A stretch of 64,000 nt of DNA from Corallochytrium limacisporum Hawaii (Eukaryota > Protista > Pluriformea): positions 38,261 through 102,260 of the forward strand of contig PDIP01000040.1 in the NCBI GenBank assembly GCA_002811645.1, read 5' to 3'. The notes under the pieces are model-generated. The model did not search any database. It was not told the DNA's origin and saw nothing but the letters and a program-made list of their open reading frames with translations. The position numbers were made by a program, and so were the translations under genes. Below, piece by piece: positions 1-8,281 of this stretch (position 1 is its first letter; every line of letters begins with the position of its first letter).

Positions 1-235
1 ACTCAATCATGATTAAAAAGAGTGATCGGGGTTCTCGTTTTCGTGCGATTTGTCTCATACTTAGGAGACAGAGGGTGGTACATCAAGAAAGCAATAAGTG
101 ATACTCTCGTTATCAGGACCCGAATGGTGGGATTGGTGTACACCGTTTGGTACAATGATCAAGTCATAGCGATATGAGGAAAAGAACGACTGCAATGCTC
201 GATAAAGAACATAAATTCAGATCAGAACATGTACT

Positions 236-2218
236 ATGGCGGATCAGCCGGTGAACAGACGGCTGTTTGTCATTTGGGTTCCAGACGATGATGAGGAACA
301 AGATCAGGCAAAGACGGATTCGCATACTTATATTGAGCGATTAGGAGGACTACAGAACATTGCAAATGCACACCGGCGTACCATTAGTGCAGCAGGGACC
401 GGAAACGTTTCACGGTTCCCATTGTCTGTCGACGGTGATGATGCACACGGCACGCACACACGGGTAGTGACCAGACACGAAGCAGCGCTCGAATACCAAC
501 CAATAGTGATTCTACGACTGTTGAATGGTGGATCTTCGACAGAATCACCCGAAATGATCGGCACTGCATGTCATACATACGTCCCGCGACCGAGACCACA
601 CATTGCGCTCGGAGCAGACGCGTTGGATCAGAGCCAACGGTCTGTGATCGAAGAGGCATTGACCAATCCTTCGCTTCACCGTCATCGACAGACCCTTAGT
701 ACAGCGTTTCCAACAGCGGTAGTGAGAGCACAAAACAGTGATGAGGGATCAGTCTTCTTGGCCCCCGGAGTCGATCGCTTGGATCACGTGCTCCGTGACT
801 GGGCCACGAGCAAGAGTGAAAGACATAGCCTCCTCGATGCTATAGGAGATGCTTTTCATGGCACTTCAAGTCGACCATTACACCCGCAGGTTGCAATTGA
901 ACGACTGGCCATGGAGATCAATCAACACTTCCGGCGGTCTGCATATCAGTCGGCTCCGACCAAGGATCCGCCAGTGTTGCGCCCACTGGTTACTCCACAA
1001 TATTTCAGCGAAACAACTCTTGCAGAGCGCAAGCGACGGACGGCTTCTGCCGCATCTGGCAATGGCAGCCTGCGGTCGCTCCGCGGCCTTGGGCCCACGA
1101 CCACCGAAACCGCGATCAAGCAGCGGCCTGCACTGCTCCTCACTGAACCCAACGAACATGCTGAATCGGTAGGGATAGTCAGTCTGCCTTTCGCAGCGCG
1201 TCGACGGCTTCGCACATTGAGCCCACTCTCTACTGGAAAAGAGCGAAAACTCTGGCACACCGATGCAGAAAGGAGCCTGGCAGCCGAGATAGATGCACTC
1301 TTTTTGAACCGTCCTATCTGGAGCGTACCAGCGCTGGCTTCAGTGATGAAGCTCAGCCCATCTCCGTCGTCATCATCCTCAGCATCTGCGAGGTCCATTG
1401 ATTACCACTTACTACGCCGTGCTCTCGCTGCAAAGTGCACCTTTCTCCCAGACGGACCCTGGGCAGGCTGTTGGTGCCGCAGAGGGCACGATCCATGCCA
1501 GAGTCCCGAGTCGCGTTGGTTCCAAACTGTCTGTTTCCGGCCCCCACCACACTCAGCCAAAAGCGCACGGGCGGCGCGGCAATGGGAGCAGAGTGCTGTG
1601 AAGAAAGGGAGGCGCTCATCACCGTCGTCAAAGTCGAAGAAAACATCTCGGCCATCGCTACAGTCATCGCTGCAGGAGCTGATCGAGTCCGACCCACCTC
1701 ATGTTTTCGCCCAAACGGCGAGACAGAAGCATTCCGAAACGGCACGGGTCTTTCAAGTCGTCGACATCGACGTCGCTTCGTTGCGTGCATGGATCGAAGA
1801 GCAGCCAATGACCGCGCGTCCACAACTGAATGGCAGCTCTGACGGTTGGTTCGAACGCGGTTTCATTACCGCACTGCGGCTGCGTATGGAGGCGTACGTC
1901 GACGCTTGGCGCCAGGGCCAAGCGGAACCCGAGGGTCTGTCAGTGACCACTGAAGCCACACGTGCGGGCGGTGTAACCACGGCCGACGATCCAGGTCCGC
2001 AGGAGCCTCCCACTAAGAAACGACGGACCGCGGCCCGTGAGGCTCCACCCAAATCATCTGCGGTACCCACAGAAGAAGCTTCTGCATTCTTGGAAGGCCT
2101 AGTTGGGGTTGAAGGGTTTGCTTTATTGGACGACGAAGATGACGAAGATGACGACGTCAATGAAAATGAGGAGAACGAGGAGGACAACGATGATGACGTA
2201 GAAGAGAGGCCAGTGTGA
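236..2218 (+). CDS. GTF3C5: RNA polymerase III transcription factor TFIIIC subunit 5 (tau95/Tfc1/Sfc1-like)
   Basis: 660-aa ORF with tau95-domain motifs LFLNRPIWS, GPWAGCWCRRGHDP, RWFQTVCFR and DGWF, plus the acidic D/E C-terminal tail typical of the family. Confidence 0.8.
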   Translation: MADQPVNRRLFVIWVPDDDEEQDQAKTDSHTYIERLGGLQNIANAHRRTISAAGTGNVSRFPLSVDGDDAHGTHTRVVTRHEAALEYQPIVILRLLNGGSSTESPEMIGTACHTYVPRPRPHIALGADALDQSQRSVIEEALTNPSLHRHRQTLSTAFPTAVVRAQNSDEGSVFLAPGVDRLDHVLRDWATSKSERHSLLDAIGDAFHGTSSRPLHPQVAIERLAMEINQHFRRSAYQSAPTKDPPVLRPLVTPQYFSETTLAERKRRTASAASGNGSLRSLRGLGPTTTETAIKQRPALLLTEPNEHAESVGIVSLPFAARRRLRTLSPLSTGKERKLWHTDAERSLAAEIDALFLNRPIWSVPALASVMKLSPSPSSSSSASARSIDYHLLRRALAAKCTFLPDGPWAGCWCRRGHDPCQSPESRWFQTVCFRPPPHSAKSARAARQWEQSAVKKGRRSSPSSKSKKTSRPSLQSSLQELIESDPPHVFAQTARQKHSETARVFQVVDIDVASLRAWIEEQPMTARPQLNGSSDGWFERGFITALRLRMEAYVDAWRQGQAEPEGLSVTTEATRAGGVTTADDPGPQEPPTKKRRTAAREAPPKSSAVPTEEASAFLEGLVGVEGFALLDDEDDEDDDVNENEENEEDNDDDVEERPV

Positions 2219-2343
2219 GACACAAAGATGACAATGGAGGCTCTGTATGAGTCTGGAGAAAGGATTTCTACTTGTTTGCTTGTTGAATGCGCCCCAGTGT
2301 ATCTAAACTGACTGGAAAGCTCATCTCCCGGAGAACTGTCTGC

Positions 2344-2917
2344 TTAACCACCGCCACCTTCCTCGTCCTCATCCTTCACAATTGGCAAACCATCGATTGT
2401 CTTCAATTGCGGCAGACATTTTCGATATCTCCGCGAGATAACTCTCCTGATCACCCTCATGCTTGTCACAGATCGGGGTTCCCTGCAGCAACAACTCTGT
2501 CAATTTCGGCATCTCTGCCAAGATTTCAATTTCGTCCCAGTCCTTGATATGTAGAGCACCTTAAGGTTCTTCAGGACCTGCACACCGCGCAGGCGCTCAT
2601 TGTTGTTGTAGCTGACCCATAGTTCCTCGAGGTTCTCTGCCAAAGGTTCCAGGCCCTCAAGCTTCTTTATGTTATTGCGACTCAACGAAAGAATTTTCAG
2701 ATTGGATAATCCGTTCAATTGCTGATTTTTGCGATGGCATTTGTTGACAGCGCCAATCTCTCGCATGCTGTAAGGCTTCCCAAGGCGGCATCCATTTTTT
2801 TTCGATCGGAGGCAGCTGCATATAGAGCTTGATTTCCTACGCTTTTGCAATATCCTCTCCCTCGTTGGCCTCTTGCCATGCAGCTAACGCGTCCTTGATA
2901 GTCGTGCCCTTCGACAT
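2344..2917 (-). pseudogene. DNAL1: Axonemal outer-arm dynein light chain 1 (LC1/DNAL1, LRR protein) pseudogene
   Basis: Manual translation across frames: [188 protein letters not shown]. This is collinear with DNAL1 end to end. In-frame TAG at 2837-2839; frameshifts near 2795-2802, 2717-2720, 2546-2550 and 2419-2422. Confidence 0.92.
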
Positions 2918-5800
2918 TACTCGGGGGTTCCCTTGTGTTTCTGAGATTATTCTTACTGAGTCTTCCCCAACCAGGATCCCGAACGGACCGGACTAGGTGC
3001 TTCTTGTCAACACCAATTGAGATCACTTCCTTGCGTTCACATTTTTTGAACGACATGCAGCGATTCTGGTATCTGACATAGCTGTTTCTATTCAATTGTA
3101 TATTCCATAACCATTCCTTTGTCGTACTGGTCATCCCTCGAATGGCGACGAACCTGTGTTCACCAGGAAATCCACACCCAGGTCCCGTTTATGTGGGGGG
3201 AAAGGGTGTGTCCCTACGCCCAACGGAGGTCAGCCGCCCCCGAGGGGGGGGGAGTCCAAGCCAGAAAAAAGAAGGCAAGGGGCCCCTACGCAAAGTTATC
3301 ACCGGCGCCCCGCTACGGTGAATATTTGCTAATGCGCGAGTGCGGAAACTCGAGAACTGTGGCTCCTGGTTGCTTGGGGGGGGGAACCGGCCGTACGCAC
3401 GCGGCTTAACGCGGTGAAGAAGTGGGTGCATGTTCAGTGTCGATTTCCAGGGTGCAATAAATGGGAACCCGGATCACACATCTTGACATTGTTGTGAACT
3501 ATTCCAATGTACCATACCAAGGGTCTCAGCCGGAATGGCAAACGGCCACTCTCTGGACGCCACTGGAAAGGAGTTGCATTGGAACGTTGCATATGCGGGC
3601 GATGTGAGTCAGGAACGACAGCAAGGCCAATGAGTGAGTTTGGTCGATTCTGCCTTACCGAGACAATGAAAGAAACGATTGAGACCTGTGATCTGCCTAA
3701 GGCTAAATGTGTCCTATGCCATGTAGCACTGCTGTGTATAGAGTCAGCAAAGATGGAACCTGGTTGAATTGTATTGAAGGGGTTACCTTTGAAGGTGCTA
3801 CCAGTGGAAATCTGGTCGCACTTCACAGGCCTCAACTTTGCAGGGTAGACAATTGGTATAGTATGATGGAGAGACTGCCTGTGACAGCGATAAGATATTC
3901 GCCATCGACGGCTCTCACAGATTCGTGGAGATTAAGGTCCTTGCTGCACAGTAAGACTAGATCATCATAACAGGATCGTAATCGGCCTGATGATTCAGGA
4001 GTAGGCATGTTGCCCAGTGACCAGAGAACATCCACAAACGAACGTACTTAACCCTTTCGTTGATTACCGACGACAACACAACAAAGCTTCCCGTATCTCT
4101 GCATCCCTATCTGATACTTCTGGTCCTGTCTATAGCATTCAGGACTCCCGTTAGACCTGGTGTCTGTCGGCAAGACTCACTGCTGAGGGCGGAGCGTGAA
4201 GCTTTCCAAGTCCTGTGTTATGAACAAGACCTCAAGTCGGGCTACTGTATCCCGAAAGAATGGTCACAGAGACTGCCCAGTGTCGAGGCAGAACTTCCAG
4301 CTCCGTATGCGGGCCACATTGTTCGTAGTTTGAAAGAACGGAGCAATGAAACTCTTAGGTTTCACAACCAATACCGTGCATGATGATAGGGATTCTGCAG
4401 GACTATCAGTCCTGATTAAATCAATATAGTGTATCAGGGAATATTATGTCAACTATAGACAATTCTGTAAACCACTTGGTATTCCCCAGAAATCACCGCC
4501 TCCCTATACGCCCAAGAACCATGTTTCAACTACTCCCCCCTTGCACACGCGCCGAACGGTTAGGGGGCACCGTGGTACCTCCTCCGCCCGGCTAGAGAAT
4601 AACCTCTTTTGCAATAAACTTATCGAGTGATACGCCCCTGTCGTGCTCATTCAGACCGGCAGGAATCCTAAATTTATCTCTCGGCCAGTTTGCGAACACA
4701 CGCGGATCTTCGGTGAACGGGAAGGAGAGGGCATTCGCCCCCGTTCCTGGCGAAATGCACTCCACCTCCCACTATTGCCGTAACATGGGGCAAGGGCTGA
4801 TATTCTGGGGCGGGAGGGAAATTCTATGAGCAACGAATGCATTTGAAAACCTAAAGAAGGCGGTGCTAAACCCTTGCCCCAGACATCCGCTATTGGTGCC
4901 CTTGTGAATGTTCCCGGGAAAGGGGGACGTCCAGACATATATAGCCTTGCCCCCTGACGCTGACCTTGCCCCTGACCCTGCCAGTGACCCTGATCATCGT
5001 CGTTTACTGTTACCGTAGGGCCTCGAAAAGACTATTCAAAGACTATTCGCTGTTTATGGAGAGGTCATGGTCTCGGCCACGCATTTCTTTCCCGTTGCAA
5101 AGTTCCGAACCTGGTGTAACCCAGGAATCCTCAGGACATACAGCTTGTCATCGGACGGGGGACACCTTCTAGTGCGAGCACTGAATGGAAGAGGGATTGA
5201 TTTGTACCACGTGGGCAGTCCAGGTTCAGTCCAGGTATTTGGCTGAGACTCTGCGAGAGTGGTACGGCGCAGGTATCGGACATTACTTTGAATGCCAGGT
5301 GCAGGGTGACTTGACCTTCAACGGACATCAGTTCATAGCCCTTTTCCGGGGCATTGAATAAGCTTAACTTTGAGAGAAGTTGCCCTACAATCTATGGTAA
5401 ACACCTGCGCTAGTGTATCTCAGGCTGCGTCTTGTGCAATTGCTACGCAAGGGCACGGGTGCGCACGGAAGCAGGAACAGAAAGTGCCGACCCTGCCAGG
5501 ATACCCTAGCCCCTTAGCATATACATAATTTTGGACCGCCGTGGTCCATCCGGTTTGATGCGATCGCAAAGGAGTCTGCAACGAAATTCCAGGCAATCTA
5601 CGATGGAGCGCCAATGGAGCAGGGGCTGCTGACTGGCAGTGTGACTGGTGCGACGTCGAGCCTGGGCGTGTCCAAGAATCGAGTACATTCACTATAAAAA
5701 TTCGAAAACACAGCGGGATACTTGTTTCAGCGTGAATCAAACCTTGACGAAAGCAGACGCACCTCCTGTGCATATTTTCGGCAACACAAATGCCATCCCG

Positions 5801-5831
5801 GGCCCAACGTTGCTTTGAGCAACGTTGGGCC
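5801..5831. repeat. Perfect 14-bp inverted repeat with 3-nt spacer, containing an X-box-like core
   Basis: GGCCCAACGTTGCT-TTG-AGCAACGTTGGGCC; the arms are exact reverse complements. Confidence 0.85.
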
Positions 5832-6975
5832 ACCTAGCTGAGACACTGGTGAAATTGGGAGCCGGTCAAGCACTGATCGCAATACTTCTATACGCCTTCC
5901 ACGGGAGGATATTACTGTATCAGATAAACACGCTTCCTGGAGTCAGAAAATGATCAACAGTGTACACCGGGCTCTGCGACCTAGAAACAGGGAGAGGGGG
6001 GGAAAGGTGGCAAGGGGGTGGGGGAACGGACAGCCGAGTGTACTCAACTGTTCTTGGCTTGTGAACCTCATCGGCATCTCCAGGAACACCTTCAGAAGCA
6101 CCTCTGTAAGGAGGGAGTCATGCCCGGAGCACATGAAATAGACCCTAGTGCCGCTAGTTTGATTGAAACCGTATATGTACTCGTACTTTTCTCCTGGCAG
6201 CACGTCTCAGCCCCCAGATGTGGATCTGCATCGAAGACTCCACACCTGGAAAGGCAACGAAAACAATGGAGAACAGCGCTACTCTGCCTGCTGGCTTCAA
6301 TGAGCCATTTATATGCTGTATGCCACTACAATTGGACCGAGCTACTCGTGTTGACATGTAGTCGATGTGTCATCGTGGTCCGTGGGTGTGAACTGTGGCG
6401 GTTGATGCGCAGACGTTTTATTGCTACACTGGAAGCGCTCAAGCACCGCTCAAGCACGGTACTACAACTGGGAGCACTGGGGCATGTATGATATTGGGCC
6501 GTCAATTCCTGCGGCCGCTTCTGCTGTTGCGGTGCTTGTGTCTGCAAGGTTAAACTATGAGTCCCTAATGCTCCTCTACCACGTAGATGTTCTAAAGCTA
6601 TGCACGTCACCATAGGAATTGTACACAAAGCTGCACACGGAGCACAACTGCAAGGAGGACGTCATGCCCAGAGCACAAGGGAGCATAAGGCCAAGTTTGG
6701 CCTCACATGGGACAGCATGGTTGCAGTGCGTCGTGACGGCACGTCAGTGCCCCCTCAGAATGGAGTTCACCTGAAGAAACCAACCAAGAAAGGCCAAGCA
6801 TGCGATAGCCCACAGACGAGTCCGTCGGTATCGATTGTGATGAGTGTGTACAGAAACCTTCGTATCATGATCTAAGCATGGACATCGAACAGGTATTTAT
6901 TGGGGTTGGGATCAGTACCGACACGTCGATTATCAGAGGCAAGCAAACACGTCTGAAATCCAATCACGTACCACA

Positions 6976-7737
6976 ATGCAACTCACTGGAATCTTTGCCT
7001 CTCTTGTCTTGGCCACTTCGGCAATGGCTCAAACTGCTGGCAGATCTTTTGATCTGGTCTTCAATGTCGGTCCAGGACCTCGGCATGGTTGTGATGCAGA
7101 TTTCGGCCATGGAGGAGTCACTGGTGAGGACATCATCACCGTTGCTGCAAGTGACTACCCCGCCTGGGGCGGCTTTACTGTCGATGTCTACAATCTTGCC
7201 CGTGCTCGCAAGTACTTCTACGACCAGGGCTTCGGTGCTGGCAAGTACGGTCACGTCGGTGGCATTGTCAACCCCCAGACCCTCTACGCGCAAACCGTAG
7301 AATCCACATCCAACAATGACTACAGCCTCGCCCTCTTCACCCATGACGTATTGACCACGGATGCGGGCGTGCCCCACCCTATCGTTCAGAGCGCCAGCGA
7401 TTCCAAGGATGCCTACTTCATTGCATTCAGCCTGCCTGTGGACACTGATCAAATCAAGGAAGCAAACTACCGGTCCTGCAAACCCTACCACAGCAAGACT
7501 CTCTACAGGTCTTCCATTGCTTACATCAACATCCCCACGAATGCAAGCACCTTTAACGTCTCCTGCAAGAGTGTCGATATGGATGATGGCAGCCGTACCC
7601 TGCAGGACCCCACAGCCTGTGTCAATGCCATTCTCAACCGCATGGAGGGCGCTTTCTGCAATGATAACCCAGTAGGTTACTCCACCAACACCAGACTGGA
7701 GACGTGCCACTCTTTCACTAACTTCAGACTGCACTAA
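6976..7737 (+). CDS. Secreted protein of unknown function, possibly a divergent PEBP/YbhB fold
   Basis: 253-aa ORF with signal peptide (MQLTGIFASLVLATSAMA), strong C-ending codon bias, A at -3 of the ATG and six Cys. The CDS call is well supported; the fold call is tentative. Confidence 0.85.
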   Translation: MQLTGIFASLVLATSAMAQTAGRSFDLVFNVGPGPRHGCDADFGHGGVTGEDIITVAASDYPAWGGFTVDVYNLARARKYFYDQGFGAGKYGHVGGIVNPQTLYAQTVESTSNNDYSLALFTHDVLTTDAGVPHPIVQSASDSKDAYFIAFSLPVDTDQIKEANYRSCKPYHSKTLYRSSIAYINIPTNASTFNVSCKSVDMDDGSRTLQDPTACVNAILNRMEGAFCNDNPVGYSTNTRLETCHSFTNFRLH

Positions 7738-8281
7738 TCGCATCATGCGCATGCACTCTTCTGCCCTAGATGCATACTTCGCTCAGCGTTCCCTCTTTTT
7801 TTTTTTGGTGTGGGCGAGGTGTTTGGCCAGGTCTGGATAGACAAGAACAGAAGTCCTTCGTTCTAACATGGTCAGACCCCTCGAAAGCCTGTTCCAGTCG
7901 TTTTTCTTTTGGGGTGGAGTTCTCTATTCCTGTTGCCGTATCCTCCGACGAAAGCAATTTTGCAGTTCGGAGAATAAGATGTTCATGAATTAAAAAGACA
8001 TGTCCCATTTGATCTTTCCGGTTTTCACTCAGTCCCCCCGTCGCCATTTCGACCTCGGCGCAGGCAGAGGTCAGAGATAGGTGGCTACCTGCGCTTCTGA
8101 TAGGTTGCCACGCTCGCCTCCAGAGGCACCTTCTTTTACAGCCACGAACAAAAAGTATTGAACGAAGAAGGTCTAGTATAACGCCTACAGAAAAGATATA
8201 TTTAGCATGGGAACATAGTGTACGGTGGTAACCAGGAACGCAGATGCAAATTGAGCTAAGGGTTATTATTCAATTGCTCGC

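Follow-up and report, generated by a model that had tools for sequence, protein, structure and literature searches.

Corallochytrium limacisporum is a small marine unicellular relative of animals, one of the few such organisms in culture, and reconstructions of the animal ancestor's cell biology make use of it. To our knowledge, a flagellum has never been observed in this species. Its centrioles have been visualised by electron microscopy (Shah et al., 2024, PMC11153136), and two reviews repeat that a cryptic flagellate stage is predicted for Corallochytrium from molecular data or gene presence (PMC7147346, PMC12731214). In Hyaloperonospora arabidopsidis, a downy mildew that has lost its flagellated stage, remnants of flagellar genes are located among intact neighbours, and long genes have been cut to short relics (Judelson et al., 2012, PMC3471859), as is also the case here. 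Unlike this oomycete, Corallochytrium is a holozoan that has retained its centrioles and an intact SAS-6 gene, and for which a flagellate stage has been predicted from gene presence. No reports of decayed flagellar genes in Corallochytrium were found in the literature searched.

The locus described in this study belongs to the family of the outer-arm dynein light chain 1 (DNAL1/LC1), with structures available for human DNAL1 (PDB 8j07), Chlamydomonas LC1 (1ds9 and 1m9l) and Tetrahymena LC1 (7k58). It is similar to these proteins in length, about 190 codons, and contains the N-terminal helix, the SDS22-type leucine-rich repeats and the C-terminal LPxLKxLDG segment in the same order. Unlike them, it has no open frame, it has changes at otherwise invariant positions, and no outer-arm heavy chain partner was found in the genome. 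PPP1R7/SDS22, which gave the next-best matches in PDB, shares the repeat type with the relic but comprises longer proteins.

The analysed stretch, hereafter the window, consists of 64,000 nt from C. limacisporum Hawaii (GCA_002811645.1, contig PDIP01000040.1, positions 38,261-102,260), and positions below refer to the window if not stated otherwise. The genome searched was the full assembly of 24,109,830 bases, which is compact and intron-poor. This 24.1-Mb assembly was generated from Illumina reads with SPAdes and has a BUSCO completeness of 83.4%, and RNA-seq data produced in 2015 by Torruella et al. were used in the same multi-species genome project of 2017 (Grau-Bove et al., 2017, PMC5560861). 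We compared the window to four data sets. Run X1 is an independent 2015 data set from a separate study, while run X2 is probably the source of the assembly itself (depth 183). Run X4 is a 2015 data set from another sample of the same organism and represents a second strain that is ~0.4% diverged, with 11 substitutions per 2501 bases relative to the window strain (positions 1500-4000). Run X5 is a marine metagenome from 2025, from which pieces at 2261-2470 and 2752-2926 were available.

Three-frame translation of the region 2300-2960 revealed a colinear DNAL1/LC1 reading on the minus strand, from a start at 2917 to a stop that ends at 2344. Searches with tblastn using six DNAL1 orthologs recovered six pieces in strict order between the Met codon and the stop codon (2346-2344), and in a MAFFT alignment with an X at each break the pieces cover the whole length of the orthologs, beginning at residue 1 (Table 1). 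The joined reading was used in scripts only, and the X4 version was likewise rebuilt by script for translation. A DNAL1 open frame is absent: an in-frame TAG and four frame breaks interrupt the reading, which makes the locus a pseudogene of the family and not a working member.

Table 1. Pieces and lesions of the DNAL1 relic in the window, and positions of other loci mentioned in the text (contig and locus coordinates where a contig is named).
Feature	Position	Strand	Observation
Piece 1	2840-2917	-	Codons 1-26, starts MSKGTTIKDAL...; aligns to the N-termini of six DNAL1 orthologs
In-frame TAG, codon 27	2837-2839	-	Same in X1, X2, X4 and X5
Piece 2	2801-2836	-	12 residues; tblastn and alignment
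Frame break 1	2795-2802	-	Coding-strand run of 8 A; frame needs 6 or 9
Piece 3	2721-2795	-	MDAALGSL...NAIAKIS
Frame break 2	2716-2720	-	One base lost at the ...AGC AAT TG... junction, between ...KISN and LNGL...
Piece 4, central LRR block	2545-2718	-	LNGLSNLK...KVLYIS; best conserved part
Frame break 3	2543-2544	-	13-base deletion that removes the 'NNxIK' residues; window strain only
Piece 5	2420-2542	-	DWDEIEIL...AEISK
Frame break 4	2416-2422	-	One surplus base (AAAATGT), between ...ISK and LPQLK...
Piece 6 and stop	2344-2415	-	Coding 2415-2347: LPQLKTIDGLPIV and acidic/Gly tail; stop 2346-2344
DHC_N2 fragment	C261:50910-51308 (L003:6671-7252)	-	0.5 kb (positions 17-155), internal TAG
p28/DNALI1	C231:108020-108448 (L005:1300-2130)	-	Split over three frames
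IFT57	C143:188816-189830 (L007:436-1675)	-	Two pieces in different frames
4871-codon frame	C182:43451-48505		Sub-threshold matches to two dynein domains
CFAP20-type domain	C246:160745-161263		Inside a frame of 2245 codons
CFAP20-type domain	C171:237743-238255		Inside a frame of 679 codons
MYND frame	C187, L004:3840-4172	-	111 codons; about 3.1-3.4 kb before the window start

The initial annotation of the window had proposed that a full-length DNAL1 reading can be rebuilt only by passing a TAG and four breaks, and each lesion was indeed present at the place named. The losses and gains of single bases near 2718 and 2420 could be confined to the short intervals given in Table 1, and the short deletion near 2548 turned out to comprise exactly 13 bases, as judged from the X4 sequence. 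Two details were modified. The TAG at codon 27 is real, and the Lys expected in its place is plausible yet uncertain, as the six orthologs have T, K, A or L in this column. Likewise, the run of eight A is present, but the six A thought to be needed are one of two lengths that would serve the frame.

A comparison of the alleles shows which lesions are common to the two strains. Base 2798, in the A run of break 1, is a C in X4 and in the metagenome, with the length unchanged, so that this break is common to both strains. The same holds for break 2, at which X4 has no indel difference, and for break 4, which is found in X4 and in the X5 piece at 2261-2470 that aligns without gaps. At break 3, X4 has 13 extra bases behind position 2543 and its reading is unbroken (...YISNNKIKDWDE...). 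A direct repeat of five bases (TTGAT on the plus strand) lies on either side of the deletion site, as expected for slippage. Two further differences between the strains are an Ala codon at 2731 in the window strain, where X4 and all orthologs have Glu as part of the conserved I-E-K-I motif, and the end stop of the relic, which is TAA in the window strain and TAG in X4 and X5.

The central piece of 73 residues was used to test the assignment to DNAL1/LC1. Searches against PDB identified human DNAL1 (8j07) with an E-value of 9.5e-19 and Chlamydomonas LC1 (1ds9) with an E-value of 6e-16, and the DNAL1 match is far beyond chance. PPP1R7/SDS22 ranked below both (PPP1R7, 2.7e-14; about 1e-14 as compared to 1e-18 for DNAL1) and matched only a part of the piece. 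The named matches to this piece in a large protein database were DNAL1 proteins of fish (74% identity), insects and a chytrid, and the closest relatives of the relic in the protein search were opisthokonts. Against the six orthologs, the conceptual reading shows 47-56% identity, compared with 36-68% among the orthologs themselves, and the relic has thus drifted little. Of the 43 columns in which all orthologs agree, it deviates in a few, with an Ile to Asn change in the LRR core, an Asn to Thr change in the GNP motif and a Leu to Ile change.

Our preferred explanation, which we regard as very probable, is that the locus is a unitary pseudogene of DNAL1/LC1, located between intact genes, that resulted from the loss of the motile axoneme. 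Several other explanations have to be weighed against it, one of which is that DNAL1 is intact and working and that its apparent lesions are errors of sequencing or assembly. A runs are a classic site of such errors and contain or adjoin two of the five lesions, but the assembly is Illumina-based with a depth of 183, and X1 is identical to the window sequence without a single difference over positions 1500-4000. X4 carries the TAG and breaks 1, 2 and 4, without break 3, and the X5 pieces carry every lesion that they cover, with X4-like alleles. The TAG and the single-base breaks are thus common to a diverged strain and a metagenome, and homopolymer errors account neither for a nonsense substitution nor for a deletion of 13 bases. 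The lesions are not assembly noise, in agreement with the initial annotation, which had held five lesions in such a short segment to be an unlikely outcome of noise; all five recur in X1, which is independent, and four are found in the second strain and, where covered, in the metagenome. Errors have thereby been largely refuted as an explanation, and we consider them exceedingly improbable. Because the metagenome carries the TAG and the breaks, the dead gene is present in wild populations too. Four of the lesions are older than the strain split and the 13-base deletion is younger, and its absence from X4 shows that decay went on after the strains had split.

A functional gene that is rescued by recoding, that is by programmed frameshifts, stop read-through, RNA editing or tiny introns, could account for the good conservation of the DNAL1 reading. 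It would require a separate rescue for the stop and for each of four breaks that differ in sign and size, one of which is polymorphic between the strains. Introns could be ruled out, as no break holds surplus sequence of the size of an intron. Reassignment of TAG was ruled out too: this codon closes 3 of the 17 long open frames in the window as an ordinary stop, from which we conclude that the genetic code is standard. The 2015 contigs, which are probably derived from RNA, match the DNA letter by letter, and no outer-arm heavy chain was found to which the product could bind. Taken together, we find recoding extremely unlikely. The relic could also be a dead duplicate of an intact DNAL1 gene situated elsewhere, for instance in unassembled DNA, and the loss of the flagellum could then not be deduced from it. 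The BUSCO completeness of 83.4% leaves some room for such a paralog, but the search of the 24.1-Mb assembly with the best conserved piece, which the initial annotation had proposed as a check, recovered no second DNAL1 copy, only the relic locus and an unrelated SDS22-like LRR protein. The latter is encoded by an intact gene on another contig and is a multi-LRR protein of 363 residues. Other motility genes are moreover independently broken or without a match, and a paralog that escaped the assembly is in our opinion very unlikely. Finally, the relic may have been kept for a new role, either without coding or through a short peptide, for example by providing antisense or 3'UTR sequence to the neighbouring TFIIIC-Tau95-like gene. 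In the two 2015 runs, which are probably RNA, the contigs include both the relic and this neighbour and end near 4440, and the relic has drifted little. A young age would explain the low drift equally well, indels and a change at a conserved site are still accumulating between the strains, and positive evidence for constraint is absent, so we rate this role as very unlikely.

The relic is surrounded by long frames of 450-1348 codons that are clean, as had been pointed out in the initial annotation. A convergent TFIIIC-Tau95-like gene ends at 2218. Two of the three differences between the strains in the neighbouring intact gene are synonymous, numbers that are too small for a test, and an exact-sequence look-up of the neighbouring protein gave no record. 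On the other side, positions 3119-6900 represent a gene-poor stretch of about 3.5 kb that adjoins the relic, and ten open frames at 3119-6872, with lengths of 86-157 codons, were scanned against Pfam with no credible match. A patch rich in G/C homopolymers at 3140-3270 contains three small indel differences between the strains (3146, 3243 and 3265). Further along, two long frames of 262 and 253 codons on opposite strands overlap nearly fully at 6964-7752, of which one at most is real.

The 2015 contigs extend from about 784 to 4445 in X1 and from about 135 to 4439 in X4 and cover the convergent neighbour as well as the relic. Each of the two data sets totals about 13 Mb of contigs, corresponding to about half of the genome, which fits RNA-seq; the label 'RNA' on X1 and X4 is a guess, and the contigs are strandless. 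The relic is thus probably transcribed, possibly just as the tail of its neighbour, and if the contigs represent RNA the sequence is not edited. The relic contains a 127-codon open frame (2883-2503) that includes the LRR core, and a survey of transcriptomes could easily count this frame as 'LC1 present'. The concern of the initial annotation that presence/absence surveys may score the gene wrongly has a counterpart in the literature, namely the prediction of a cryptic flagellum from gene presence (PMC7147346, PMC12731214).

We also searched the genome for other dynein and flagellar genes. Searches with five Pfam domains (DHC_N2, Dynein_heavy, AAA_6, MT and AAA_9) all matched one open frame of 4907 codons on contig 184, which is presumably the cytoplasmic dynein heavy chain. 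No axonemal or outer-arm heavy chain was found with these five domains in the six-frame searches of the assembly, which were a first look, as were all family searches in the own genome, and a blank in them is not proof of absence. Two of the five domains also gave sub-threshold matches to a frame of 4871 codons, which may encode a giant AAA protein of the midasin type and not a dynein. The only other real heavy-chain trace was a DHC_N2 fragment wedged between an intact frame of 814 codons and Rad51 (Table 1), which seems to be all that is left of an axonemal or IFT dynein gene of roughly 13 kb. The gene for the inner-arm light chain p28/DNALI1 scored 226 bits to its family and is split over three frames. 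The two pieces of IFT57 are accompanied by overlapping junk, with no room for an intron, and probably represent a frameshifted flagellar gene. No match was obtained for the Tektin and Radial_spoke (radial-spoke head) families in the six-frame search of the assembly.

The centriole gene SAS-6 is an intact frame of 585 codons. CFAP20-type domains were found only inside two long frames, which resemble WDR90/POC16-like or CFAP20DC-like centriolar proteins, while a stand-alone CFAP20 of about 190 residues was not seen in the six-frame search. Among the handful of genes tested, the centriole set is kept, whereas the motility and transport sets are decayed. Our results support the suggestion in the initial annotation that the lineage gave up its outer arms or a motile flagellum, and they extend it, given that no axonemal heavy chain was found, that p28 and IFT57 are frameshifted, and that Tektin and the radial-spoke head are without a match. 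Outside the window, the 111-codon frame listed in Table 1 has a C-terminal MYND zinc finger, with no recognisable upstream part. It fits a candidate relic of ZMYND10, a dynein-arm assembly factor, for which a MYND finger alone is no proof.

A likely course of events is that selection on DNAL1 ended when the lineage ceased to build a motile axoneme. Early on, a nonsense substitution, the loss of one base and two slips of a single base each, at or next to A runs, would have disabled the gene. The 13-base deletion between direct repeats and the Glu to Ala change at a conserved position would have occurred later and in the window strain alone. One strain-specific deletion and one conserved-site change point towards neutral evolution of the relic, although only four substitutions separate the two strains. 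As a rough estimate, the four shared lesions, one lineage-specific lesion since the split at ~0.4%, and three or four changed invariant residues suggest that the neutral divergence since inactivation is at most a few percent.

The heavy chains are far more eroded than DNAL1, which means either that they died earlier or that long genes are deleted faster in a compact genome. Since they are almost wholly deleted, the loss of the flagellum is not very fresh. The description of the loss as 'caught in progress' in the initial annotation is therefore fitting only in part, although the DNAL1 relic itself has drifted little. A scan of metagenomes for close relatives with an intact gene recovered only loci of 60-62% identity from distant organisms. 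The locus of a 103-residue match (P0003) was useless for dating, as it belongs to an intron-rich eukaryote and is not syntenic.

The case is an ordinary one of pseudogene biology, of a type already known, and provides a useful correction regarding a key relative of the animals. Three observations argue against a hidden flagellate stage: DNAL1 is full-length but dead, p28 and IFT57 are dead as well, and no axonemal heavy chain was found. It seems that the cryptic-flagellum prediction is founded, at least in part, on gene fossils that similarity searches score as 'present', and relics such as those described here would have contributed to the published version of it (PMC7147346, PMC12731214). 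We lean slightly towards the broader interpretation that the 'flagellar toolkit' of Corallochytrium consists largely of recognisable, probably transcribed pseudogenes for the outer arm, the inner arm and IFT, and that the organism is truly aflagellate with centrioles for mitosis only. A reduced, non-motile ciliary structure may nevertheless persist. Presence/absence tables that are derived from transcriptomes or from six-frame matches need a check of frame integrity. The strain-specific 13-base deletion provides a handle for dating the decay, and if the broader interpretation is true, the character map of the Holozoa would need one more independent loss of the flagellum, which could be dated from the polymorphic lesions.
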